Shown: in pieces, positions 1,300 to 38,682 of the stretch
Layout of the letters: each line of letters starts with the position of its first letter
Position numbering within the stretch: position 1 is the stretch's first letter
Assembly (NCBI GenBank): GCA_973895155.1
Contig: OZ316898.1
Span: forward strand, 13,546,330-13,610,329
Length of the DNA stretch: 64,000 nt
Origin: Marsupella aquatica
Taxonomy: Eukaryota > Plantae > Marchantiophyta
Direction of reading: 5' to 3'
Position numbers and translations under genes: made by a program
The notes under the pieces: generated by a model
Seen by the model: only the letters and a program-made list of their open reading frames with translations
Told to the model about the DNA's origin: nothing
The model's database searches: none

Positions 1300-4200
1300 A
1301 CTCCAAAATATACAAAACTGAAATGAGAATGGACAAAAAACAAGGACAAAGACTAATCAAAATAGCATATAAATTTTATTGTGCAAGATTTTTCTTCATA
1401 TCTATTTATGTTCAAGCGTGCGTTCAAGGAATGGGTCTTGGGGCTAGTTAGTTAGTAATGTTCTTGACAAAGTAAGAAAGTGGGCAAAAAATGACTATTT
1501 TGTCCTCCTACAGATTTCTGTGATGCCTTATTGCAGGCCTTGTTGCAAGGTTCAACATTTCAGCCTTACCATGTCACACAAGGCAAGAGCATAGGAAAAC
1601 CTACCAAGGTTTGACCGCTTTCTGTACAGAGTGCTGATTGCTGACTCACAAATGATTCACATAACAGGATTGCAAAGCCCCATATATCATGTTGAGCCCT
1701 AGACTAGAGTGACCATCTATTTCCTTGAGTCACAATTTCAAGGGGGCAACAGTCCAGGTGATTTCTAGTATGATGGACAGTCAATGCAATATTTGACAAG
1801 ATGCTCAGATTGACTGCCAAACCCAGTTTGAAGCGCTGTTTTTTACTCGACTTTTTCTTGGTATGAGTATTGACAATTTTGTTGTCAAAAAGACCATGGT
1901 CTGTTGGAGTCCTGAATTCAAACATGGAAGTCCATCTTGGCATTAACTTTTGTGAATTGTATAATTCATTGAATGCCAATTGGATCCATTCTACAACAAA
2001 TAAGTATTGGATTCCCTTTTGTTAATAATATAGTATAATGATGGCTGGCTGTTTCCACTTTGGAAGATATTTGGTATCCAAAATTGAAGAATCCAGAAAG
2101 AGTAGTAACTCACTGAAAGCTCACACACTTGGTCATAGCAAGAAGAAAGAGGGGCTGAACTCATCAAGTTGTTGATGCCAAGGGGTGCGCATTGTTGGCT
2201 GTTTGCCAATTCAGTGTAGCCTGCATGTGTTCTTTGCATGAGCATACAGTAGCTACTGTATGTATGTAAGTATCTTCCAAAGTAAAAACAACCAATTTGG
2301 AACTCTAAGCTCAAATGGGATCCTCCTCCAAAACGTTTCCCCTTGGATAAGATTCCTAGCTTGCATGAGATCTATGACAAAATGTAGTTAACTACATTGT
2401 TCTCACAATTAGTGTTACCCATACTCCCCTCCACACTAATTCTGGGGTGCAATAAATTTTTGGCCACACTTATGCATTAGTGTTACCTTAGAAAAGACTT
2501 GACAAGCATTTAAATTTTCTCCTCCTCATCTGAAGAAGGTGGGTGCCCCATGTACATGGACAATTCAGTTGCACTAACTGGTAATTGCAATTTGTGAGCA
2601 AGATTAATATGAATGAACTTTTGCATTTATCAGGCAATCACGCTTTTTTTCTGTCTTATTTGGAAACTTTGTCTTAATTGCTGAATATCATTGCACTACT
2701 TAGGTGATGAGGGAAGCTGGAACTTTATGAAGAGGTCTAATCAGACATGAGTGATGCAACTTTCGTGTCCAAACAATCAAAGAGCAGCACCAAATTCAAT
2801 ATTTCTGCAAAAATGTCTACACCCAAAATTGGACAAATTAATTAATTTTTTACACCACCACTAGAACACCACTTAACTCTATGAATAGGTCAAACGCTAG
2901 ATTTCACTTATCAAAGCTCCATTTACGTAGGTCTACAGTACCTGTATCTCACCCAAGCTTATGACTCTATCCCTGCCACTAATGCAGTCCAAGCATTGGC
3001 CCTTGGCACTAATGGACAGAAATATTTGTCCATAGCTTGTTTAGAGGCAGAGAACACGAGTGCAGCTCATTTTAGCGTGCAATGTGGACAACAACATTTC
3101 ATGACTGTAAGAGCTATCGAGACTCCAGAGGAACTGAAAAGATCCTAATTGGGATGAAAGCTGACAACGGCAGGGTTCATGGGACAGCTCATCAATGTGG
3201 ATTAATTAGTCATGAACACTTAGGTTTCTCCCCAGTCAGAATGATGTCCTCAAAGTTGCACGTAAGCTGTTCCTCGGAGTGGTTCCAGACTCCTATCCTC
3301 AAAGCACATCTTGGGTGGTAGAGAGTGCATTCAACTAATCCTTTAGAAGATGAGCAAAATTTAAATATGAAAGAGTTGAAAGGCTTATTGCATGTAGGCA
3401 GCCCTTTCTTCTGCAACCCTCAATTGAACTGATTGTATCAATGAATTACTGAGAATTTCATACCTGAACCCCCTCCTGCGGCAGGCCTGATGGCATTTGT
3501 TGTGGACAATAATGGGCTAAAGGCCGGAAACATTCCCATAGTCTCAACGTCTGAAATGTGGATACAAGAAGTGTCTCTGTAAAATTCTTGTTGAAAATTA
3601 AGAAGAAGGGAGACTAGAAGGGCTTGCTCACTTGATATGTAGCAGGGCCAGAAGATAATGTGGGCCATTGCAATCCGCTATTTCTTTGCCCTATAGGGAA
3701 TGCAAAGGACCTAAATTCATGGGGCTGCCTACATGCAAGACAGCCCTTAGTGGATGCGAGGTGGATGCTTAGAGCTTGTGGGCCAGATGAACACTCTCAG
3801 AGGATGACTCCAAGCTACAGTTGGACAAAACCCCTAGGGCACCAGTGACCACTGGTCCTCCTTGCTGCTCCACCGGTCCTCAGTTCTGCTGCCCCTTGTG
3901 TATGCTGCTATTCGAATGGAATTCATTTGGTTTATTTCAAAGGAAAAGAATCCTAGAGCTATTCTTCAACAGACATTCATGAGTACTGAATATGTGGGCA
4001 GCTCCTTGTGCCCTGCTGGTAATCACACATCAAAATGTGGCTGCATTCATTGATTGAAAGAAAAAAACTAGGATTATCACGGTATGTAAGGGTGCCATAT
4101 ATAGTATATGTCATATTTTGATGTGCAGTTACCGAGACCCCTCCTTGTGATGAGATTCTGACACAACAAGAGGCACTGTAATGATTAATCTAAAATAGGG

Positions 4201-5405
4201 GACAATCTAATTAAACACAGAATCTAAATTACACAAGCAAGGATTACTACTACAGGAAGGAAAAATCCTCAAACATGGCTCTGGTCACAAATCATTCAAA
4301 TATTAAACCTCTACGTAAACTACCTTACATAGAGATGCCTCATGCATCTTAATGTAAAAAAAACGCACCAGAAATAAAGATTGGGAACTTAAAAAATTTC
4401 ATTAGATCAAAGTTACATGAAAGTTTCTGCAGACCAAAATAGGTCCCTCACAAGTTTCAATTGCTTTTCTACAAAATTTGACCTTGGTTACTTACTAACC
4501 AAAGTCAAATTGTGAGTTAGATGTACTGCTCAGAACTATGGTGACCAAGGGGGCATTGGGTTTGAACACATGTGCAAAGAGGTTGCACACTTCCAAAACT
4601 TTTTAGAAAGTTTTGGTTCAAAGTTTGCATGAAACTAAGTCTCAAATAAAACATCAGTACACAATAAGTACGAAGAGGTTTACTGGAGCTAATATTTCTG
4701 ACCCTTTTGGTGCACCATAGTGGAGACAAAAAGGTTCAGAATGATCGCTGCAGTTGACCAGCACACAAATGTGTTTCTCCAAACAAAGCCATTTCCTTAT
4801 TGAATAGAAGGGGACACAACTCACAAAGAATGCCAATCTACCTTTTGCTCAGCAAGCAACTAAGCTGACAAGGTAGAAAAACATCAGCTACTACAGTCAC
4901 TTGGAAAAGCACTGCAGTAGGTGGAGGTGAGCTATGAACTGCGAAATGCAATTGCGTACCTACCTCGCTTTATCAATGCTGCTGCCTGAATCAAGGCACC
5001 ATGTCAAAAAACCTTCGCTATGGCTCACTCTCGAGCAACAGAAGGCATTGTATTGTTGTATATATTGTATTGTCCTTTGCTGATCTGTAGCTCTTCAGAC
5101 ACAGATCAGCAAACTCTAGCTGGATAGGAACCGAACCCCGATCCACATTTTGGTGCAGAGGTACCTTTGGTTGAGAGAGATCTTCAGTCGAGGAATGATT
5201 TGAGTTCAGGGTGGTCGGATGGTTGATGGATCTTCAAAATATAAACCAAGAGAGAGCAAGGCTGACACAAAGGCCGGCTCTTCGGAGTAAAATATACACA
5301 CATTCACAACCCAGACTGATTGGATTTCTTCGTAATAACGCGAGTGAGGCTGCACAGGAATCATGTCCACAGATCGGCAGGTAGGTAGGATGAGGCTACC
5401 GTTTG

Positions 5406-11986
<6,581 letters not shown>

Positions 11987-24539: not shown

Positions 24540-25870
24540 CATGCATCTGCCTTTCTTTGTTGGGTGCCAGTATACAATGGATCTGTGGACTTTACCTCAT
24601 TGGATGGAGTGGATGATGAGTCTTCAGATGTGGATGTTGGTGAGGTAACTTTTGGACAACAAGATATTCACAATGATGTGAGAGTGTTGGAATATCTGCG
24701 CTGTGGTTCTATTGTTGGCAGTGTTGATGCCAAAGAACATGACAGGGTTCTACAAAGAGCCAAGAGGTTTCGATGGGAGGGAAACCATCTTTTGAGAGTA
24801 CTGCATGATGGTAGGGTGTTGGTGGTACCAAAACCATCACAACGAGTACATTTGATGCGACATGCACACGAGGAGTTGGGTCACTTTGGTGTGAAGCGCA
24901 CTTATAGCTTGCTGCAGACACAGTATTGGTGGCGTGGTATGCACACTCATGTCCAACAGTTGATAGCTAAGTGTGTGGTATGCGATAGAGTGAGAGCATT
25001 ATTTAATGCTCCCATTCCCCAGTTGCACCCGTTACCGATCATGGGTTTGGGATATCGTTGGAGTTTGGATTTTGCTGGTCCATTACCTCTTACCCAACGC
25101 CATAATCGGTATGTTTTGGTCATGGTGGAGCACTTCTTCAAGTGGATTGAGCTAGTGGCGTTGCCAGATAAAGCCAGTGGAGGAGTTGTTGCTACATTTT
25201 TGGATCGCGTTGTCGTGATTTTCTCTTAAGTTATAAAAAAATTGTTTGTTTTAATATGCTATAGATTATATAAGTAATTTAGTAGTTAGATTATTAAATT
25301 TAAACTTTATTAAACTTCTTTAGCTATATTAACGGACTATAGTAGTTCCACCAATGCATATGAGTAGTTCCACCAACTACAATAATATTCACCAACGCAT
25401 AGTAGTTCTACCAACGCACAGTAGGTTCACCAGCGCATAGTAGTTCTACCAACGCACAGTAGGTTCACCAACGCATAGTAGGTCCACCAACGCATAGTAG
25501 TTCCACCAACGCATGATAGTTCCACCTACTAAAAGTAGTTTCACCAACTATGAACAGTACTAGCACACTCTTAGGTATTAGATGTTTGACACTTGGCCTT
25601 CATCCAAGTGCTTGGGCTTGATCCATGCCCTCTTGGTGTGCACTATAAATAAAGTGGTGAGGGGCACTCTCCCCTCATTCCGCAGTGTTTATCATTCAAG
25701 GGTGTGAAGCTCTTTTGTGCCTTGAACATAGTAGTGGGGCGTCCTTTGGCCCGGATAGCAAAGGAATGAGTGGTAGATTTATAGATGGGACCTTAGGGAA
25801 TAAGGTTTCTTTGGGAATATAGGGGTGGGGCGTCATTTGGCCCGGATAGCAAAGGAATAGGAGAGCCATC

Positions 25871-26086
25871 ATGAATCCAGGAGAGAGAGTTATCCCTGAT
25901 CTTCCCCTTCGTAATCCGTTTTTGATTATAGTTTATCTTTTAGACAAACCATCTATGAGGCAATATCTAACCTATCATTTTGGAGCTCAGTTTGCAACTG
26001 CTGTTATGGTTTCTAACGAGCCAATAATATACCCAGTGGTGTCGTACCGAAAGGAGTGGGAGTGCATCATCTTTGTCTTTTATTGA
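25871..26086 (+). CDS. LTR-encoded microprotein type A (71 aa, unknown function)
   Basis: Ungapped similarity to ORF 37805-38014 (13/48 identities: K..RQ...HFG..F...V..S..P...P...Y...W). Confidence 0.7.
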   Translation: MNPGERVIPDLPLRNPFLIIVYLLDKPSMRQYLTYHFGAQFATAVMVSNEPIIYPVVSYRKEWECIIFVFY

Positions 26087-26090
26087 AATC

Positions 26091-26296
26091 ATGGATCTGA
26101 ATAGGAGTCCGGATGATATTCCTGTTTCATTTTCTCTTGGAGATATTAGGATCATATATCGTAAGAAAACTAATTTCCGTGATGTGTTGGTCCGCAAGTA
26201 TGGTGAAGTAGGGTTTAATAGTATTTTAGTTTCACCTGAACCTTTCTTATACCCACTACCCTTGTTACTAGAATTATCATTTTGATTTTAGTGTAG
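26091..26296 (+). CDS. LTR-encoded microprotein type B (MDLNRSP..., ~65 aa; probable 1-bp deletion near C-terminus)
   Basis: Similar to ORF 36533-36736 (shared MDLNRxP; 14/36 identities in core). Current frame stops at 26285; restoring the A seen in the 3' LTR copy gives PFLIPTTLVTRIIILILV*, matching the homolog's hydrophobic tail. Confidence 0.7.
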
Positions 26297-26372
26297 AACT
26301 TATGAGCATGCAAGGTTAACTTCAAAAGAGCCAACATGCTCTTGCCAGAAAACAAGGTCACCCGGACATAAG

Positions 26373-26390
26373 TGGCGACCATACTGGGGA
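26373..26390 (+). promoter_or_regulatory. Element 2 primer-binding site, tRNA-Arg-like
   Basis: TGGCGACCATACTGGGGA 4 nt after the 5' LTR; resembles the complement of plant tRNA-Arg 3' ends. Confidence 0.7.
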
Positions 26391-26513
26391 ACCGCTGGAT
26401 TTGGAAGTTAGTTTGTGCATATTTGAGTTCTAATGGATGAAGAGAAATATGGGTTGGAACTTTGAGTTCTTAACTTGTTTATATTATTAAGTCAAGAGGG
26501 AAGAATTGCAATC

Positions 26514-29078
26514 ATGGGAACTGAGATGAATCCAACTGACATGGAGAGGTTTTCATCCTTGATTGCTGCTTACTTACATGGAATGAAGGAGAAGGAGATG
26601 GAGGAGAACAAGAAGAAGGAGTTGCTTGGTAGGACCACGAAGTACCTATACTCGGTTCTTACCAAGCAAGGAGAATTTGATGGGCGAAATGTAACCAAGT
26701 ATCTCAAGGGGTACTGGACGGAGGCTACAATTCATAAGATTGATGCAGAAGTTGCAATCAAGGAGTTTGTATCTTTAGTAGAACCTGAACTCAAGGGAAT
26801 TGTTACTACCTTGATAGATGGAGCTACTGGGGAGAAAGCATGGAAGGTCTTTGAGTTGAAGATGAAAGAAGAATTTCAGCTTGAAGATCCAGATCGAGTT
26901 ACTCAAGCATCTTTCCTTGATTGGGTGGCCGATAGAAGCAAGAAGTTGGGACCTCAAGAACTAATAAGGGAGTTTACGAAGAAGTTCAATCAGCCTCCTG
27001 AGATTGGTTCTGAAGTTATCAAGGTACAGAAGGCTACTTTACTTATCCGAGCTGCTGATGAGAAGCTTCAAGACGAGTTGGAGCTTGCTCTGGAATTGAT
27101 GAACCGAAGTCGTGGAGCCAGTCCACCAACTTGGGAGGAGATTGAGATTGCTGTGCTTAGGGTCAGCCAAAAGCATAGAAGAAAGAAGCTGAGTCATGAA
27201 GGTGCTCTACATGCGGTTGCACCTGTGACTTCTATGAGGAGAATGGAGAAAATAGAGTCAACAACTAGTAGGGGTGAGAAAAGCATGGACAAAATGGATG
27301 AGTTATCTGAACTCATGAAAAATCTTACCATTCTTGCCACCCAAGCCTTCGAGCAGATGGGAGGAGGTGCATCAAGACTAGCGTCAAGAGGTGGTCCAGG
27401 AGCCGGGAGTTCCATTGGCGGAGCAAGGAGTTGGAATTGTATTTGGTGTGATAGTAAGGAGCACTCAAGGCGTGAATGTGGGGAGCTTTCTGTTGCTCTG
27501 AGAGAGAGAATAGTCAAGTTCATTGATCATGATGGCATAAGAAAGCTTGCTTATCATGATTCAGGAGAGCTTATTCCAGTAAACACAAACAAGGGCGGTA
27601 TGAAGGTGTTGGTGGAGAGAAGAATGACTGAACATCATACTTCAGCCATTGCAGGAGCTTTTGGAGATCAGGATGAGCATGAAGCAGATGTTTACACCCT
27701 CTTTGGGAGTTCTTCGTCAATAGAGACAGACAAGAAGAGACTAGCAGAGTTTGTAAGGAGGAAGTCAGATTGGAGTGATCCAATGTTGATCTCTTCTTTC
27801 ACTGCAGAAGTGGGATCTCTATGGGATTCTATGGTAGAGGAGAAACGAAAGTCATCGGAACCTTTGGAAGAACGTGCCAAAGGAAAACAAAAGGTTGAGC
27901 CTGGACCCTCTATTTTGCAGCCATCATCAAGAGTCCCAACAAGGAGGAGTGTTCGATTTGAAGATAGAGGAAGTACAACAAAGGAGCCTACTTCGACTCC
28001 TTCATCCTCAAAGGAGATGGAAGTGGTAAAAAAAGAGAAGGTGGAAAAGAAAGGACCTGGTTGGGTCCTTGGAAGAGATGTTGAGCAGCACATTGCGTAT
28101 GATCAAGTTGCTGAGAAGTTTTGGAAAGCGGAGGTGAGCGGAGTCACCAATGAGGATTTTTTTGCTTGCATGAACTCCAAGGCTCAAGATGCATTACTTG
28201 CAAAAGTGAAACGAAAATGATTTTACAAGGAAGGACCTCATGCCTTGGGAATGGAGGTTTTTTCTGATGTTGATGAAGATGGAGAAGGTTCAATTGTTTC
28301 TCAAGCCAGTGTGGAGTGTGAAATGTATCAAGTGAATGCGGAGAAGATCCCTAGACCACAGATGCTAGGGTCTTCAACAAAGGAAGTTCCTGAACCAAAG
28401 ATGTCAGGAGTTGAGGTATTGGAGAGGTGGAAACCATTGGCGAAAGCAACAACAGGATTTGCAGTGACCCAGGATATGACAAAAATTAGTCGTGAAGAGG
28501 TGCTCAAGGCCTCACAAAGTGTGTGGGTCATGTGTGCTTCAGCTATGAAGAATCTTGATTCAGGAGACGACAAGGAGTCCATCTTGGAGCCGTTTTGGGC
28601 AAGAACTTGGTCAGTTGTGGAGGTAGAGCTTGTAGGAATGGAGGGCAAAGCTCGAGCATTGTTTGACACAGGATCTGAGGTGAATCTAATGTCAAGAAGC
28701 ATCTATGATCTTGGGCAATGGATGATTGATTATGATACTCAATGGTCTGTCAACTCAATCAATCGTTCAAAGAATATGCTTTGGGGAGGATGCCCTGGAG
28801 TATCAGTGAAGGTTGGCCATGTGATAGAACCAACTAACATCTTTGTGCATGATAGCTTGCCCTATGATCTCATTCTAGGGCAGCCTTACATTATTGAAGC
28901 TCGAATGGAGTACAAGGTCCTACCAGATGGCACTCATATGACAAAGGTAAGGAGTCGGGATGAATTGCGGGTTATCCAATTTCCTGTAGTGAAACCTGGA
29001 CATTGGAGGAATCGGAAGGAGTTGAAAGGACCTGAACCCAAGGAAGGAAATGAGGATTTCTGGAAGGCGTCTCGTTAA
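26514..29078 (+). pseudogene. Element 2 gag-protease (in-frame stop at 28218-28220)
   Basis: CCHC knuckle CIWCDSKEHSRREC; protease ALFDTGSEVN...DLILGQP. Confidence 0.88.
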
Positions 29079-32000
29079 GCAATGCGGGAGGGCGGGGCGC
29101 CATCGCCAATGACCCGTTGGTGACTTGGAATGTGAATAGTTTGTTGGCAAGCTCATTTGAAGGTGAAAGCTTGCATTGTCGAATTTCTTATGTGAAAGTG
29201 TGTGAAGCTACTAAAAAATTCAAAAAGAAAATTGCAAGGATTGAGGATACTATGCAAATACATGGATTGCTAGAGGAAAGTGAAGAGATTGAAGGCCTTC
29301 TAGATGAAGAAGGAGTAGAAGTGTTTTTGAAAGAAATAATTGAAGGTCTTTCAGAGGGAAAGCTCATATGGAAATCAATCATGAGCTGTATGGCGAGTTG
29401 TCTCAATTTGTTGAGGTCAACACCAAGTACAAAACAGTGGAAAAGAAAGTGAGACCAGCAGCAATTCCTTTACCTTTGGATGCTAGGGAGATTTTGGAGA
29501 AGGCAGGTAAAGAGACCAGTCTTAGAGATCAGACTAAGATTGGCCACAAATTCACGAAGAAGACCCTTAATCAACTAAGGATTGGTGATGATGGGTTGCT
29601 GACAAAAGAAGAGAGAGAAGAGTTTCAGCAAATGATTGGTGAGCATGGTAAGGCTTTTGCCTTTTGTCTTGAAGAGATGGGATGTGTGGATCCTAGTGTT
29701 GTTACTCCTATGGTAATTTTCACTGTCCCGCATGTTCCTTGGGACTTGAAACCCATTCTAGTGCCCAAGGCTTTGTTACCTAAACTTATTGATCTATTAA
29801 AGGAGAAGCTTTCCACTAGGATTTTGGAAAGAACAGATGCACCTTATTCTAATCGTTGGTTTACTATTCGTAAGAAAAATGGTAAACTTAGATTTATTCA
29901 GGACATGCAACCACCTAACAAGGTTACTATTCGCAATACTGGAATAGGACCTATAGTAGATGAATTTGCAGAAGAATTTGCTGGTAGAGCCATCTATTCA
30001 TGCGGTGACCTCTATTCAAGCTATGATCAGTTTCAGTTGGCTCAGAGTAGTAGAGATATCACCACTATGAGGACACCTTTGGGGCTACTTCGCATGTGTA
30101 TCTTGCCTCAAGGGGCAACCAACTCGGTGGCTCACATGCAGAATGCCATGAATAAGGTATTACACCGTTTCATTCCAGAGAAGACACAACCATTCCTTGA
30201 TGATATGCCAATCAAGGGATGTTTGGAGACAAAGAAAGATGAGACTATACGTGAAGATGACTTGCGACAATTTGTATGGGAGCACATTCAAGATGTGAAA
30301 GCAATCTTGAAGAGGTTGATTGAGGTTGGGCTCACTCTTTCTGGTGAGAAATCTTCATTTGGGCTTCGTGAAGTCCTAATTGTAGGACAAATTTGTGGAG
30401 TTGATGGGAGGAAGCCAAATGGAGGAAAAGTAGATGCAATCAATCAGATGAAAGATTGTAGGACAACTTCGGAGGTGCGAAGGTTCCTTGGTGCTTGCTT
30501 GTTCTATAGGATCTGGATTCCTCACTTTGCACATATTGCTGATCCTTTGGACGGATTATTGAGGAAGAATGTGCACTTTGTTTGGACAGAGGCACATAAG
30601 GAGGCTATGCAAAGGTTAAAGGAGGCCTTACTTAGCCCCCTTGTTTTACGTCCCTTATGCTATGATGGAAGACCCATCATTGTCACTGTAGATTCAAGTC
30701 CTGATGCTGCTGGATGGGCGGTAGGGCAGGATGATGAGGAGGGGAGAAGATTTGCAGCAAGGTTTGGAGCTAAGATCTTTTCAGCAAGGCAAAGGCATTA
30801 CCCTCAAATCAAGCGAGAGTTGTGGGGAGCAAGGATAGCCTTGTGTCAAGAAAAAGTCTACTTGATTGGAGCACAAGTCATTCTTGAGACTGATTGTTTA
30901 CCACTTTTAGGGATGATTGCTAACTGTGATACTCCAGACATTGCTATGCTACGTTGGATAGCTTTTATTAGGATGATCAACCCCGAGCTTCGACACATTG
31001 CTGGAAAAGATAATCCAGTAGCAGATATGCTTTCAAGAGCCCGCTATGATCAGAATGAAGTGGAGGCAGTTCAAGTGATGAATGGAGAGTTTGAGGTCTT
31101 AACATTTCGAGATGAGCTCTATTTTGGAGAGTTGCTCTTGATTGGAAGGTACCTTAGTACTCTTCAAAGGCCTGTTGAAATGATAGAAGAGAAGTTTCAA
31201 CAATTACGAAAGAAGGCTTACAAGTTCATGCTCAAGGATGGTGTTTTATGGAGAAGGTCTTTGAAGAAAGGACATGTTCCTTGTAGAGTTCTTGATACAG
31301 ATGAAGAGAAGAAGAGAGTCTTATGGGATTCTCATGATGCTGTTGAAGCAGGACATCGAGGAGTTAGAGCTACCTATGAGCGGGTTCAAAGGTGGTACTG
31401 GTGGTCAGGCATGTATGTGGATATAAAATCCTATGTTGGATCTTGTGAGAGTTGTCAGTATTACTCTAAAGTTTGGTTTAGAGATGAACTTAATCCCACT
31501 AGTCCTCTTTCTTTACATTTTCAGTGGGCAGTAGATGTGGTGCACATGCCATGGGGAATTAGGGGGGGCAAAGTACCTTGTCCTTGCAAGAGAAGATTTA
31601 TCTTCTTATGTCGAAAGAAGGGCTTTAACCTCTAACACTACAGAAGCAGTATGCAGGTTCATACTTGAAGACGTTATAGCACGTCATGGTTGTTTTGTGC
31701 AAATGAGAGCAGATAGAGGAGAGCTGAATTCTGAAGAGGCTACAGAATTTTTCGACTGGTTCAACATCAAGCTCAAACTCACTACTGCCTACAACCCGGA
31801 AGGAAATGGAAAGATTGAGCGAGGGCACCCACCGATAGTGAATGCCTTGGTGAAATCTTGCCAAGGAAAACCATCACTTTGGCCCAATCTTCTACCATTT
31901 GCTCTTTTGGCAAATCGAATGACATGCACTACCACAACAGGAATTACGCCTACCGAATTAGTCTCTGGACATTTGCCTTTGATGCCGATTGAGGAAAATG

Positions 32001-32456
32001 TTCAGAGTTGGAGGATGATTGAATGGCAAGATAGAATCTCCCGAGAAAAGTTGCTGGAGCGAAGGATTGAGCACTTTAGCCAGACCAAGGAGAAGATTGA
32101 TGAGGCATTACTAAAGCTAAAGGAGGCTCGTGAGAAGAATAAGGAACGATTTGACAAGACCCATCGTTTGAGACCAATTCCCATCCAGAATGGAGATTGG
32201 GTCTTGATCTATGAGGGAGGGTTGGAACAACAACATTCTACTCTGAAGAAGTTTGCACATCGTTGGAGAGGATCATTTGTGATGGAGGAGGTTCGTCCTA
32301 ATGCAACATATGTGGTAAGAGAACTTGATGGAGCAATTCATCGCAATCCCTATGCAGGGAAGTGAGTGAAATTATTTAAACGACGAACTCGATTTGTGAC
32401 AAAGGAAGAGTTTGAACCCGACGACTATGGGGCTTTAGATGAAGAAGACATGTAGC
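29054..32456 (+). pseudogene. Element 2 pol (RT-RNase H-integrase), frameshifted
   Basis: GKLRFIQD, GDLYSSYDQ, LPQGATNS, FLDD; RNase H TVDSS...KRELWG...ETDC...ADMLSR; HHCC; WAVD...RADRGE...GKIERGH. Confidence 0.92.
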
Positions 32457-32508
32457 GATTCTAGGTGTGGTGCATACCGGAGGATGCACAGATTTGGTAG
32501 GGGTGATG

Positions 32509-33312
32509 TGTCGTGATTTTCTCTTAAGTTATGAAAAAATTGTTTGTTTTAATATGCTATAGATTATATAAGTAATTTAGTAGTTAGATTATTAAATTTA
32601 AACTTTATTAAACTTCTTTAGCTATATTAACGGACTATAGTAGTTCCACCAATGCATATGAGTAGTTCCACCAACTACAATAATATTCACCAACGCATAG
32701 TAGTTCTACCAACGCACAGTAGGTCCACCAGCGCATAGTAGTTCTACCAACGCATAGTAGGTCCACCAACGCATAGTAGTTCCACCAACGCATGGTAGTT
32801 CCACCTACTAAAAGTAGTTTCACCAACTATGAACAGTACTAGCACACTCTTAGGTATTAGATGTTTGACACTTGGCCTTCATCCAAGTGCTTGGGCTTGA
32901 TGCATGCCCTCTTGGTGTGCACTATAAATAAAGTGGTGAGGGGCACTCTCCCCTCATTCCGTAGTGTTTATTATTCAAGGTTGTGAAGCTCTTTTGTGCC
33001 TTGAACATAGTAGTGGGGCGTCCTTTGGCCCGGATAGCAAAGGAATGAGTGGTAGACTTATAGATAGGACCTTAGGGAATAAGGTTTCTTTGGGAATATA
33101 GGGGTGGGGCGTCCTTTGGCCCGGATAGGGTAGTGGGTATTAAGAAAGGGTAGTGGGTATTAAGAAAGGTATCTGAACCTTTCTTAATACCCACTACCCA
33201 CTACCCTTTTACTAGAATTATCATTTTGATTTTAGTGTAGAACTTATGAGCATGCAAGGTTAACTTCAAAAGAGCCAACATGCTCTTGCCAGAAAACACG
33301 GTCACCCGGACA
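32509..33312 (+). repeat. Element 2 3' LTR (804 bp); microprotein region deleted and replaced by a hairpin
   Basis: Colinear with the 5' LTR except about 25850-26235 is missing; inverted repeat at 33148-33199. Confidence 0.9.
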
Positions 33313-33585
33313 GCGTACTCAGTCATTTTGGAGCACCAGCTGAGGTGTTGGCTGATCAGGGAACTGAGTTCCGTGGAGAGTTTGAGAGTTTGTGTGAACA
33401 AGCTTTGATTGATCATCGTACTACCTCTCGTGATCATCCTGAGGCAGATGGATTAGCTGAGAGAGTTGTGCAAACTGTGAAGAGAGGATTGCGTAAGTAT
33501 GGCTTGCAGGTTGGTCATCTGGGAGATTGGGATCTCCAGCTACCTTGGTTAGCTATGGGCTACCGTTTCAGTCGGCAAGCATCAC

Positions 33586-36140
33586 TGTCACTTGCCTATC
33601 CAACGATTAATACTTGCAAACCGTACTTTTCTTCGCTTAAACCGTTGGTATCGTATTACGGGGTCGTGGAGGGACGCTATTTGGAAGATTTTCACACCTA
33701 AGGATGAGTATGTTTGATTTCGCTCCCGGAAGTGTACTTTTTGATCAAGTCTACTGACTGGTCTCTCCGTTTTTGATCAAGTCCAAGGGACTGGTCCTAC
33801 TATCTACAACTCATGCCCACCGGGTGAGTGCTGTCACCACCCCCCTCTCCTGGGCAAGCATACAAACGTTTACAATAAGGTTTGAACACTAGTGACCAGG
33901 GCAAATGTTTCCACAACGAAACCGACCACATGCACTGGGGAGGAAAACAAACCACACAAGCAACCACAAGTGACACACAAAATATTGAAACCTCAAGCCA
34001 AATCCATATCTCTTGGTGTTTCCCGTAACACATGCAAGGACAACCCGGCCTCCTGCCGTCTGCCCAACTCCTGCCTCCCGGGGACAAGTGCTACGTTCTC
34101 CACCTCACTACTCTGGCTTGAACTTCTCCTAATCGGTGCGCTACTCACAAAAGCTACTCCAAAGCATCCAAGCACTACGCTGAGTTCCCCCCTTACAACT
34201 TCGGGGCTCTCCCCCGAAATACCGAAAAACCACACCAAAGCACCCATCGTGGGATCACAACGATGGCGGCTACCCTAGCGGCGCCGCTAAAACCCTGCAC
34301 TAAGAAACCCCTAAACTAAAAGCATGCGGCACACACATGCTTCTAAAACCCTAAACTAACTATGGGACCGACGGTGCCTTCGACGGTGCCCCAACATCGC
34401 TCCGTGAACCGCGAAAAATGCAAGGGACCCCACAATGGCCGAAACTAGGTGCCCTTCCACTTTCACTTCTGAGTTCACCCCTGGATAGCCCTCCTCCTCC
34501 TGATCATGAATCACTCAACCGCTCTTGAAACGGACATCGGACGACCAAGTTATGGCCGTTTTAGTATCCCGTAAACCTAACTTCGTCGGGCCCTAACTTG
34601 CTCATCCTGGCTTCGTTTGAGGAGCGCCGCCTCTTGTTGGAATAAGCTCCGCGAGCTCTTTCCATCAAGCCCGTGAGTGACCCCTCAAAAAAAAGTTGGA
34701 AAGTCAAGGGGCCGTACAACCACGTCCGTACGACCACCCTAGTCCTCCTCATCCTCACTCATGGTGCCATGGCTTGAGCCCCGTGAGTTGGTCTCCTCAT
34801 CAGTTCTCCTCCTCCTCACTCACGGTGCCCTGGCTTGAGCCCCGTGAGTTGGTCTCTCCTCATCACTCTCCATTGGAGTGGTATGCTAAACAAGGACTCA
34901 CTTGAGTCCACCACCGGTCCGTTGTAAAAGGAGGGGGCCCCTATAATTGTCGAAACTAGAATTTTCTCAGAATTCACTTCTGAAAACATATCTGAGGAGC
35001 CCTCTTCTTCCTGATCACGGCTCCGTAAACGGTGCACAAAACGGAGGTCAAACGGCCAAGATATGGTCGTTTAAGTTTTCACGGGGCACCGTCTCCCTCC
35101 GTTTCGTCCGTACAACACCACGGGACCCCGGTTTTGCAAAAACATGGATCACGGTTTCCCCGTATGTGCTGCTACCTCCTCCTTCTCTTGCAAAGCCGGG
35201 ACCTCCTTCCGTACGGACATCCGTACGGCCTCAAAACTCCCGTATTCTAAAAAAAAATGCGATCGGTTGTATCTCCCCCGTCTTAGCTCCGTTTTGGCCG
35301 TGTGACACATCGTTGGATTCAGCTCGGCAAGCTCTTTCCAACAAGCTCGTAGACTCTTGATTTTGAGATGGTCGAAAATCTGATGTTCGTACAACCAGGG
35401 TCCGTACACACATTGAAAGCAAGCACAAGAGGGAAAGGGTTTAGGGTTTAGGTATGGATGGAAACCCCACAAGTGAGAATAGAGAAAAAGGGAAGGTGTG
35501 AGGGCCCCTTCTACGGTGGGGAAGGGAAAGAGAGCAAAAAAACATGTGAGGACCGCACAAAGGGTGAAGGGGAACACAAGTGTGGGAACCCCTTCCTTCT
35601 AAGGGCCCTCCCACCATCACTACTCCAAGATTGTCTAGTTTGCCGTTTTACGGGCATTGAGGTCCCTTGAGATGTCACTGTTTGATATAGACCTAAAATC
35701 AACTAGAAAACCTCAGTTTCGCATGGGGCTCATTAAGGGCTTCAAAATGAATCCAAACATGATCATGTTTGGAATAGTACTAGCGCAGCAACGTCTGTTT
35801 TAAGTTTCAATGTTTTCTATATTTTGGTCATTCTTCCCGTTTTGCGCCTTACGTGGAGCCTCCGACCAGCCCCCACCCCTCCAAGATGCCCACACCTTGC
35901 CTCCAAGTCCCTGGGCTGCCTTGTGGCCTCCTTGTACCCCCTCAATGGTTCCCTTGTCATCCATCACCGCCCGACACCCCTCTCAACTCCGGCCTCCGGT
36001 TGTCGCATCCATTTCTTAGAACTAACAAAAATAAAAAATTTGAAAATCCAAACACTTTTACTACACCTACTTGTCTTTCTACTTATATACGTAATTATAA
36101 GTCATCACTAAGTTACTACCGGGTTTGGGGCCCTGTCACA
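33586..36140 (-). mobile_element. Nested solo LTR (element 3, 2555 bp), probable Gypsy type
   Basis: TG...CA ends; 5-bp TSD ATCAC (33581-33585, 36141-36145); no coding domains. Orientation inferred, not certain. Confidence 0.82.
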
Positions 36141-36532
36141 ATCACTTGCATCCTTCTCACCTTACTTTTTGCTCTATGGTAGAGAGTCAGATTTGCCAAC
36201 AGCTATTCGTCGTGATGCTGCACTAGTTGTGAACTTGGATGATCCTGATGTTTGGGTCAAGGTGTGTTCAGAGAGAGCACGGGTATTTCAGAGAGTGATG
36301 CCCATAGCTTTAGACAACCTTGCCATTGCCCAACATCGTGATACTTTGAGGTATGCCACTATTCGTGGAGGAGGTTACCGTGCAAGCATTCGACGATTTC
36401 ATCCTGGTGATTATGTTTATTTGCAGCAGACAGCACCCACAACACTTGATGTGACCGCTGTCATGAAGTTCATGGGCGATGTCGGGAAAGCCCGGGCTTC
36501 TGTCTGTCGGAAGAACAATGCGCTACGACGTG

Positions 36533-36736
36533 CTAATAAAACACTACGATCATTATCCGACATCGTTCAATTGTCATGGGAACAACGAATGGAATCGGGG
36601 ATGAAATAATCATGGTATATGCCGACTCCCCAAAGTTTCTGATGATGAAGGCTCGAAACTCAGTTTTTTGGCGACATATCACCTGAACATTACAATCTAT
36701 ACTAAAATTAGGCCTAGGAACTCTATTGAGGTCCAT
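36533..36736 (-). CDS. LTR-encoded microprotein type B (67 aa, MDLNRVP...)
   Basis: Homologous to the ORF starting at 26091; intact ATG-to-stop frame. Confidence 0.7.
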   Translation of the reverse strand: MDLNRVPRPNFSIDCNVQVICRQKTEFRAFIIRNFGESAYTMIISSPIPFVVPMTIERCRIMIVVFY

Positions 36737-37804
36737 CTTGTAATTCAGAATCACGGTACAAGCTTCTTGAACATAGGAAATTCACCTACGGTTGTCAATT
36801 TCCTTTGTATCATATCAAACAAGCCAAGTATTTTCTATCCTATCATCCCTCAAAGGTTCGAGTCAAAACTCTATCTCCATCAACAGGTACAAAGAAAAAT
36901 GGTGGACCTATCTAGATTGCAGGCTACGAAGACCCTGTCACCGTCACCATACTATATATCTCACTTAAAGATAGATATACCCTCAAAATTTTTTCCTAGG
37001 CATGACATAGCTTCTTATCTATTTCCAGGAAAAAAATTTAAATATGCATCTTATTCTAGGAAAATATTATAAGCAATATTCAAACTCAGAAAAATATGGT
37101 TCTATTTGAGCATAATCTAAACCTTCAAGTCATCATAACTTTCTAGCATTATACCAAAATCAAGTGATTCCAAAAGCAAACTTGGTGTGCTCATCAAGGT
37201 GATCAAAGTTAGAATACTATTTCCCTAAGAAAAATATATCATAATGATTTCCTATATAGTACAACCTTTACTATTTAATAACTTTCTAACAATGTCACAT
37301 CTCTAGCTTCCAAGCACATTCTATGAATTCTTATACTCCCCACACTATTCTTGCACATAAGTTTGGAATAACAAAGAAACTCACCATGCCACCCCCAAGG
37401 GGCAGGCCTCTTATTTATAGTGCTTTGGAGGGGTAATGACTCACCCCTTTGGTACACATGGTCCAATAATATTTGAACATGTAAACAACAAGGTGTTTGG
37501 ATGCTATTGGGCATGTTTCCATGCGTATCCTCCTTTCGACACCTAATTGGCCATGTGTTTGATTCTAAATGGACATGCAACCATGCAAGGCCTTTTTACA
37601 CATGTATGCCACGTATCCCTATATATTTTGCTATGTCATAAATTTAGTGGAAAAGTAAAGCCCCCTAGTAGGCCTATACTCTAGTTTATGATAATTATTC
37701 ATATAGCCCACAATACTTTATTTAGAAGTGCTTTGTCGTCACTCTAACCCATCATAGGATGCCTAAATTTTGTAACTAGGCATGATGAATCACCAAACTA
37801 GCTA

Positions 37805-38014
37805 TTATGTTAAAATATAAAAACATATAACCCACTTATGTGTATATGTAAGCGTGGGTAAGAACAAAGGTTGAGCGGATTCTTCAACCTCCCGAAGGAA
37901 TCGCACACCAAAGTGATGCACGATGAATTGCCGAAAATGAACTTTCTCCATAACCTGGAACTGAAATTCAACGTGATTTGGAAATCCAACTGGCGCCCCG
38001 TGCACTCCATCCAT
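37805..38014 (-). CDS. LTR-encoded microprotein type A (69 aa)
   Basis: Homologous to ORF 25871-26086; intact ATG-to-stop frame. Confidence 0.7.
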   Translation of the reverse strand: MDGVHGAPVGFPNHVEFQFQVMEKVHFRQFIVHHFGVRFLREVEESAQPLFLPTLTYTHKWVICFYILT

Positions 38015-38682
38015 TGTTGCTTTCTTGCCTTAGAGTTGTTGCCTCCTCCTCTCGTTCCTCGTTTCTTTATGAATCGGCAACCCGCTACAAGCATAGGTAC
38101 CCGACTTATGGTCTTATTTGTCATCTTAAGTCGAGATGTTGCAAACCCAAAATATACCCGTGTAACTTAGGTGTACTATTTGCACCAAAGTTACCACGAC
38201 ACCGCAGGCCGGACAATCTTACGTGTGCGTGAAGTGTTGCCTTCTGGTGTCCTGATGTTGGAGGGACGCGATGGTATGGTTTGGAAGGATCATGTGCGCA
38301 ACTGTGCACCATGTCACCTTCCCAACATTGATGGTACAGTAGATCCAAGCTTGGCACATGTTCGTGCTGGCTTGAAATGTATGTTGTGTGGATCTGCTCA
38401 GGGAGCAGCTACTATGTTGATTTGTGATAAGTGTTCTAGAGGATGGCACATGTCATGTTTGACATCACCATTGCAGGTGATTCCTAGTGGATCATGGTTG
38501 TGTCCTCAGTATCGGTGAAGCCGACTAGTTATCATTTGTGTTCTCTTGGCAGATATGGATTGCAGGTAGGTGATCGATGGGGCTCACTTGCACCCGACCT
38601 CCTGATCTTCACACCTAAAAAGGTGTATATCAACCTTGTAGAACTCATGGCTAGCTAGAGTTAGGGGACCTTACTCCCAGCT

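Follow-up and report, generated by a model that had tools for sequence, protein, structure and literature searches.

Within a 64,000-nucleotide (nt) stretch of the genome of the liverwort Marsupella aquatica (hereafter the window; contig OZ316898.1), the long terminal repeats (LTRs) of two retrotransposon families each carry a pair of small open reading frames (ORFs), called A and B. On the comparative evidence below, we regard A and B with high confidence as real, selected protein-coding genes. With moderate confidence overall, we propose that liverwort Ty3/gypsy retrotransposons have in them two paralogous accessory genes, which would be expressed as leader cistrons to give folded, trans-acting proteins of ~70 residues, with B serving as an EAR-type adaptor. 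The four ORFs and the two LTRs that hold them are as follows.

25211-26368, plus strand: 5' LTR of element 2, 1158 bp, with TG...CA termini; direct repeat with 32509-33312.
25871-26086, plus strand: ORF-A1, A-type leader protein, 71 residues, intact; E 2.6e-23 against the family hidden Markov model (HMM).
26091-26285, plus strand: ORF-B1, B-type leader protein, 64 residues, with N-terminal DLNxxP; tail out of frame in the window copy.
36459-38201, minus strand: solo LTR, element 4, 1743 bp, of a second family; termini TGTCGTG...CATGACA.
38014-37805, minus strand: ORF-A2, A-type, 69 residues, intact, at LTR positions 188-397; HMM E 2.3e-27.
36736-36533, minus strand: ORF-B2, B-type, 67 residues, intact, with N-terminal DLNxxP; HMM E 7.3e-24.

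An earlier sequence-only reading of the window had proposed these four ORFs, and all of them exist; its end for ORF-B1 (26296) lay 11 nt too far, the true end being 26285. In a tblastn search of the six-frame window, A1 and A2 matched each other at E 4e-7 and B1 and B2 at E 1e-10, each as the top non-self match, which bears out the A/A and B/B similarity noted in that reading, and the spaced motif then drawn up is fitted by all four peptides. The DNA around them behaves differently: between the LTRs of elements 2 and 4, blastn finds a single shared word of 13 nt, the TATA box, so that the surrounding LTR DNA is indeed unalignable between the two families. Whereas A1 and B1 are adjacent, A2 and B2 lie 1.07 kb apart with a TATA-like word between them, and the LTR of element 4 ends 74 nt past the ORF-B2 stop. 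A2 differs from family protein P0023 at 12 of 69 residues (83% identical, counted by hand). ORF-B1 matches the family HMM at E 1.3e-17 over profile positions 6-63 only; in a comparison of contigs, most other copies have one additional base after 26248, which puts the last 13 codons of the window B1 out of frame.

A profile built from the four window peptides was run against 1.84 billion representative proteins and matched 91 clusters at E <1e-3, 20 of them at E <=1e-10. Nearly all members are 63-75 residues long and align with the profile end to end. They come mostly from run assemblies and metagenomes, Calypogeia fissa being the liverwort source among the relatives, and carry no annotation beyond "hypothetical protein". 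None of the six ORF variants of the window has an exact entry in the protein collection, and a word-indexed search with B1 alone returned no candidate; it was the full-scan profile search that found the family. The shared core, conserved over the whole of its 55 residues, consists of a β-strand, the K-x2-[FM]-[RQ] motif, two helices leading to a conserved S-x2-P, and a hydrophobic C-terminal β-hairpin.

The members differ at their N-termini. A-type proteins start approximately with M-D-R-G followed by a proline-rich lead-in, B-type proteins with M-D-L-N-[RQL]-x-P (DLNLPP in a few members), and a third subtype with M-N-N. The DLNxxP motif is present in 24 of the 31 B-type and in none of the 27 A-type proteins, and synonymous variation is seen among its codons. 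B-type proteins are mostly basic (median isoelectric point, 9.2; net charge, +2), and A-type proteins are about neutral. The two types nevertheless align by hhalign with 97.4% probability (E 1e-11), and A and B are therefore paralogs, as the shared spaced motif had first suggested. Natural A-B (P0024) and B-B (P0026) fusions occur, the latter 500 nt after pol in contig L010 (fetched contigs carry the prefix L). The three family matches above 300 residues are all repeat artefacts or marginal. Among the long ORFs, P0035 and P0097 consist of at least 7 tandem units of ~52 residues, in which the first strand and K-x2-F-R part of a B-type protein are included; apparently, part of the gene has undergone tandem amplification in some genome.

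Selection was estimated from pairwise substitution counts at high divergence. Between the window and L022, the A proteins share 72% of their residues (dS, 1.19; dN, 0.15; dN/dS, 0.13; p 7e-10), and the B proteins share 69% over the first 52 (intact) codons, with a saturated synonymous proportion pS of 0.74 and a non-synonymous proportion pN of 0.19 (p 4e-9). In the same comparison, differences at the first, second, and third codon positions number 15/7/28 for A and 11/11/27 for B. For A and B, dN/dS is 0.07-0.24; with pS and pN Jukes–Cantor-corrected by hand, it is ~0.2 for B in the unsaturated pair L006/L001 and ~0.18 for gag between the window and L001. Between families, A and B retain 50-60% amino acid identity as against 44% for gag. 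Judged by these substitution patterns, A and B are shown to be under purifying selection about as strong as that on gag.

The distribution of DNA identity along the LTR leads to the same view. Three parts of the window LTR can be aligned to L021 and L022 and no others, namely its promoter core, the block of A and B, and the LTR terminus together with the primer-binding site. The A-B block (25864-26302) is 74% identical with few gaps, one of which is the one-base frameshift of the window copy, whereas the LTR end and primer site are 70% identical with many gaps, and U3 and the segment 25698-25863 are unalignable. The promoter core and primer-site region are the usual functional parts of an LTR; these two apart, identity outside the ORFs is below that inside, which upholds the coding interpretation. 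The sequence-only reading had named a dN/dS near 1 with frequent frame disruption in young copies, or equal identity outside the ORFs, as signs that would speak against it; in the comparisons of the window with L021 and L022, dN/dS is about 0.1 and identity, the two functional regions apart, is unequal.

The position of the pair was examined in 13 related contigs with A-B from different samples, 11 of which include the start of gag. In the window lineage, A is followed after 1-4 nt by B; the LTR then runs on for 50-390 nt to its end, ...GGACA or ...AGACA, and a spacer of 4 nt leads to the primer-binding site TGGCGACCATACTGGGG and, beyond it, gag-pol. The order from A and B through LTR end and primer site to gag-pol was found in L005 and L006 from C. 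fissa, in the eight contigs L013-L020, and in L021; L022 and L023 hold the A-B pair only, and L001 (C. fissa) has B in the same position before the LTR end, without A. The pair precedes the LTR end and primer site in the window, L002, L005, L006, L013, and L021. This boundary is well conserved in the window, L002, L005, and L006 and more diverged in L001 and L013, and its placement puts the A-B pair inside the LTR. In L021, the pair is present in both LTRs, which demonstrates that the genes are truly LTR-borne in this lineage. The unusual primer site TGGCGACCATACTGGGG is common to the Ty3/gypsy lineage of the window and unlike the initiator-tRNA site of L024 (9788-9799).

A second Ty3/gypsy lineage, marked by a chromodomain and a capsid of Ty3 type, has just one small ORF, of B-type, directly upstream of gag (L007/L008). 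Its position relative to the LTR was read from L024, the L007 contig having one collapsed LTR. In L024, the LTR similarity stops at ...TGTTACA and is followed by the initiator-tRNA primer site TGGTATCAGAGC, with the B-type ORF ~200 nt later and no copy of it in the 3' LTR. The earlier claim that the genes are encoded inside LTRs thus holds for the window lineage and fails for the chromodomain lineage, where the ORF follows the primer site; the general trait is a location in the 5' leader ahead of gag. All fetched family members adjoin Ty3/gypsy genes, and at every fetched locus with gag on the same strand the small ORFs are upstream of gag and co-oriented with it. The A/B region is covered by contigs from 4 of 4 sequencing runs, and the family is highly repeated in 2 of them. 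The closest relative of the solo LTR, a contig of 1738 nt, has A at 111-320 and a 72-residue ORF at 1021-1239; the separated layout of A and B is therefore a trait of the solo-LTR family.

Two contigs depart from these layouts. L001 is a mosaic, in which gag (4001-5902) is 76-88% identical to the type of the window and L002, while for the B ORF (3522-3737) identity is 69% with the L006 type but just 35-43% with that of the window and L002; this mismatch indicates an exchange of LTR or leader between lineages. As far as sequence comparison goes, the gene shows exchange as a module between two deeply separated Ty3/gypsy lineages. In L009, a pair of third-type ORFs at 402-847 (73 and 71 residues, 8 nt apart) lies beside a gag-pol on the opposite strand (1671-6095), an arrangement that may reflect an adjacent or nested element or an antisense layout.

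Two cis-acting landmarks frame the pair in element 2.

25554-25697, plus strand: promoter core, 85.5% identical to L021/L022, with the TATA box GCACTATAAATAA at 25640-25652.
26373-26389, plus strand: primer-binding site TGGCGACCATACTGGGG, 4 nt past the LTR end of element 2.

Contig depth in runs of other organisms peaks at the promoter core, and many contigs of other subfamilies diverge at 25681. From the TATA core upstream of A and B together with this divergence point, we infer that transcription of element 2 starts nearby, at about 25680, so that the pair would belong to the transcribed leader (R/U5). The segment from the TATA box to ORF-A contains two copies of a 24-nt motif, TCCTTTGGCCCGGATAGCAAAGGA (25742-25765 and 25833-25856), which recurs at 33021-33044 and in L013-L020 (e.g. 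L013 298-321 and 418-441), letter-perfect though gag is only 44% identical. The motif can form a 7-bp stem and is probably a cis element. RNA folding of the leader segment 25720-25870, which holds these repeats, was no better than that of shuffled sequences (z +1.2).

The A1 model obtained with AlphaFold2 from a 72-sequence alignment has a mean predicted local distance difference test score (pLDDT) of 88.6, the five models ranging from 85 to 89. The predicted order of elements is a strand (17-24), two helices (26-37 and 39-47), and two strands (52-59 and 63-70), i.e. β-α-α-β-β. The B1 model, its damaged tail included, reaches a pLDDT of 79.5. Pfam gave no match for the four window peptides and nothing recurrent across the 72 members; a sequence search of the PDB gave no match (best E 1.2), Foldseek nothing above noise (best E 0.36 in the PDB and 0.14 in BFVD), a full VIA-align scan a best Z of 3.4, well under the noise level quoted for the tool, and the ESM Atlas no usable match. 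Glyoxalase half-modules and the dimer modules of Hsp40 and S-layer proteins recurred as weak rows (Z 2-3.4), which do not count as evidence, and a comparison of the domain with gag showed no relation. The earlier statement that no known domain is present therefore agrees with the Pfam, PDB, Foldseek, and VIA-align searches, none of which gave a significant match. The predicted fold is unmatched and a candidate new fold; since small domains are hard to match, we do not call it proven new.

These observations can be joined into the following model. Transcription would start at the TATA core upstream of A, making A and B the first long cistrons of the genomic RNA. B would be translated after A by termination and reinitiation, the gap of 1-8 nt from the A stop to the B start suggesting coupled translation. 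The small β-α-α-β-β module would then act in trans, probably by pairing as A-B or B-B: conservation along the whole length, the globular model, the retention of paralog pairs, the A-B and B-B fusions, and the intact ORFs of the solo LTR all speak for released proteins that act in trans and associate through the domain. That the products are trans-acting folded proteins is, in our judgement, probable. Finally, the DLNxxP motif of B may bring a TOPLESS-type co-repressor to the target of the module, thereby adjusting how strongly the element or host defence genes are transcribed. Owing to the presence of DLNxxP in most B-type and no A-type proteins and the synonymous variation of its codons, we rank the TOPLESS adaptor as the most specific mechanism available; recruitment of such a co-repressor by B through the EAR-like motif is nonetheless a tentative proposal with a low probability. 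Because the genes of the window lineage lie inside the LTR, each LTR of that lineage, and hence each solo LTR, can carry A and B. The combined statement, namely a new class of LTR- or leader-borne accessory protein that has a new small fold and in which B hijacks host TOPLESS through an EAR-type DLNxxP and every LTR, solo LTRs included, is a potential source of a host-directed regulator, is speculative and, taken as a whole, doubtful.

Several points weigh against this model. No relative in sequence or structure that hints at a biochemical activity emerged from the sequence, PDB, BFVD, and VIA-align scans, and no RNA-labelled run was found to hold the LTR sequence. The transcription start and leader assignment draw on the TATA box and the conservation boundary only, and 70-codon ORFs ahead of gag should impede its translation if ribosomes have no way round them. 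The layout of the solo-LTR family, in which 0.7-1.07 kb separate A from B and A precedes the one TATA word that can be recognised, is a poor fit to a simple pair of leader cistrons. The DLNxxP motif is, moreover, short. A complex prediction for the intact A and B of L013 scored 0.01; the fold of the partner was uncertain and family alignments were not used, and the result counts neither way for binding.

Another explanation keeps a trans-acting product and assigns it to the handling of nucleic acids: export, packaging, or dimerisation of the genomic RNA, or binding of small RNAs to blunt silencing. The basic character of B-type proteins would suit such a role, small upstream or accessory factors that handle RNA are known from retroelements and retroviruses (Cer1 CERV being an example), and the weak structural echoes are of dimer-forming half-domains, at Z of at most 3.4. 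However, no RNA-binding fold or motif is recognisable by Pfam, Foldseek, or VIA-align, the A-type proteins are about neutral, and the conserved DLNxxP would be left unexplained. We consider this role rather unlikely.

Alternatively, A and B could be conserved-peptide upstream ORFs (uORFs) acting in cis, their translation or the stalling of the nascent peptides setting the flow of ribosomes to gag, with released peptides that have no function. Their co-oriented position upstream of gag at every locus with a same-strand gag, the conservation of the peptide sequence, as in the conserved-peptide uORFs of plants, and the tight A-B spacing, which suggests that ribosome flow matters, are all in keeping with this. 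Yet conservation extends over the whole 55-residue core and not just a C-terminal stalling segment, AlphaFold predicts a confident globular domain, and diverged paralogs of two or three types are maintained together, with B retaining its N-terminal motif. Moreover, the solo LTR, which has no gag after it, keeps both ORFs intact, in a family in which A is 0.7-1.07 kb from B. A purely cis-acting role thus seems unlikely.

Capture of a host-gene fragment by one element, followed by its spread, is documented for plant LTR retrotransposons (PMC7264820), but is very improbable here: all credible matches are stand-alone small ORFs, those fetched lying beside Ty3/gypsy genes, no longer cellular protein with the domain appears among the profile matches, and the family spans two deeply separated Ty3/gypsy lineages. 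Least credible of all is the view that A and B are chance ORFs in homologous, neutrally drifting LTR DNA, their peptide likeness a by-product of DNA likeness, because, although short ORFs are frequent in AT-rich LTRs, the window B1 is frameshifted at its end, and the pair is gone from the 3' LTR of element 2, it is contradicted by in-frame peptide matches of E 1e-7 to 1e-10 between two LTRs without DNA similarity, by the 91 clusters that match the profile, by the gathering of substitutions at third codon positions (dN/dS ~0.1), and by an A-B block with few gaps between flanks that are unalignable or gap-rich.

The remaining features of the two elements in the window are the following.

26514-32365, plus strand: gag, protease, reverse transcriptase–RNase H, and integrase of element 2, broken into several ORFs.
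32509-33312, plus strand: 3' LTR of element 2, 804 bp, without ORF-A and most of ORF-B.
33129-33170, plus strand: inverted copies in the 3' LTR of element 2, read from the sequence; inverted blastn match 33170-33146.
37411-37423, minus strand: TATA-like 13-mer in element 4, identical to the copy in element 2; E 0.07, weakly significant by itself.

Element 2 is a Ty3/gypsy insertion inside the integrase gene of another element, flanked by a 4-bp target-site duplication, GCGT, at 25207-25210 and 33313-33316. The division of its coding region into several ORFs marks it as a decayed copy; homologs of its gag are 80% (a metagenome scaffold) and 76% (C. fissa) identical. It carries the A-B pair in the 5' LTR only: ~360 bp (roughly 25870-26230) are swapped in the 3' LTR for an inverted duplication. 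At 33129-33170, two tandem inverted copies of the next ~20 nt give a hairpin-like palindrome, and the loss of A and B from this LTR looks like a fold-back or template-switch deletion. Element 4 is flanked by a GCGG target-site duplication (minus strand), and its flanks continue the integrase ORF of the same host element that holds element 2. The pieces of this host integrase gene (24564-25229, 33345-33701, 36169-36458, and 38206-38518) show three interruptions over 13 kb, namely element 2, a GC-rich insert (52%) at ~33.7-36.2 kb, and the solo LTR; the integrase C-terminus of the host element has a PHD-like finger.

Extra genes of LTR retrotransposons are rare and poorly understood and have hitherto been described in the internal region. 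Here, a family of small proteins constrained like the capsid gene lies in the leader and, in one lineage, within the LTR itself, so that intact genes ignored by annotation could be present in each of the LTRs and solo LTRs that a liverwort genome holds in tens of thousands. The family profile is ready for annotating A and B ORFs in bryophyte genomes, and the genes offer a testable entry to the dealings of bryophyte retroelements with their hosts, be it in translation control, silencing, or co-repressor recruitment. If the EAR-adaptor proposal were true, this would be the first LTR retrotransposon to encode its own adaptor to a plant co-repressor. The literature searched holds no account of small paired ORFs in the LTRs or leaders of bryophyte elements, nor of transposon-encoded EAR proteins, in line with the earlier view that the genes are undescribed.

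Among known systems, the additional ORFs (aORFs) of plant LTR retrotransposons are a natural point of comparison; they include ORF1 of Ogre, the env-like ORFs of Athila and Bagy2, and the antisense ORFs of Grande, RIRE2, and Retand, are placed internally, for the most part in the interval from pol to the 3' LTR, and are of unknown origin and function (PMC7264820). Like these, A and B are extra to gag-pol, are present in most copies of the family (13 contigs; 4 of 4 runs) and not in one transduced copy, are conserved near the level of the core genes, and have no similarity to host genes. Unlike them, A and B are of ~70 codons, form a paralogous pair, and stand upstream of gag; the internal-region location is absent from the window lineage, where the pair is in the LTR, and is found only in the chromodomain lineage (L024). 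Pfam scans revealed no sequence relation of A or B to any named aORF.

Two viral genes share the location in LTR DNA. Mouse mammary tumour virus sag lies in U3, and nef of the human and simian immunodeficiency viruses overlaps the 3' U3, both being expressed from spliced or 3'-proximal messages. A and B resemble sag and nef as accessory coding sequences in LTR DNA that are consequently duplicated at both ends of the provirus; in element 2, however, the TATA box precedes the ORFs, which would put them in R/U5 and not in U3, and searches of Pfam, the PDB, and BFVD showed no match in sequence or structure to viral proteins. ORFs in a long leader before the main cistron are also known as the conserved-peptide uORFs of plants and the short leader ORFs of the caulimovirus pregenomic RNA. 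A and B likewise precede the main cistron, with spacing tight enough to suggest reinitiation, and in element 2 their position, past a conserved TATA core and ahead of gag, would fit a leader shared with the main ORF, whereas in the solo-LTR family A precedes the TATA-like word. They differ from both kinds of leader ORF in being longer, conserved over the whole length, predicted to fold, and kept in a solo LTR.

With respect to the host, the EAR motif (DLNxxP or LxLxL) of land-plant repressors recruits TOPLESS/TPR co-repressors. B-type proteins have a sequence that agrees with the DLNxxP consensus, and DLNLPP, present in a few of them, is the form in class II ERF repressors; unlike in such repressors, the motif of B stands at the extreme N-terminus of a 65-residue protein without a DNA-binding domain, and A-type proteins are without it. 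A further parallel is CERV of Cer1, an accessory protein of a Caenorhabditis elegans LTR retrotransposon that is reported to be needed for nuclear export of the genomic RNA (PMC10309623). CERV, too, is an extra protein encoded by a retrotransposon, and serves the element's own RNA; general family and structure searches gave no sequence relation of A or B to it, no dedicated test having been made. Set beside these systems, A and B form a family of accessory genes in LTR retrotransposons whose location and pairing are new and whose fold is unmatched.

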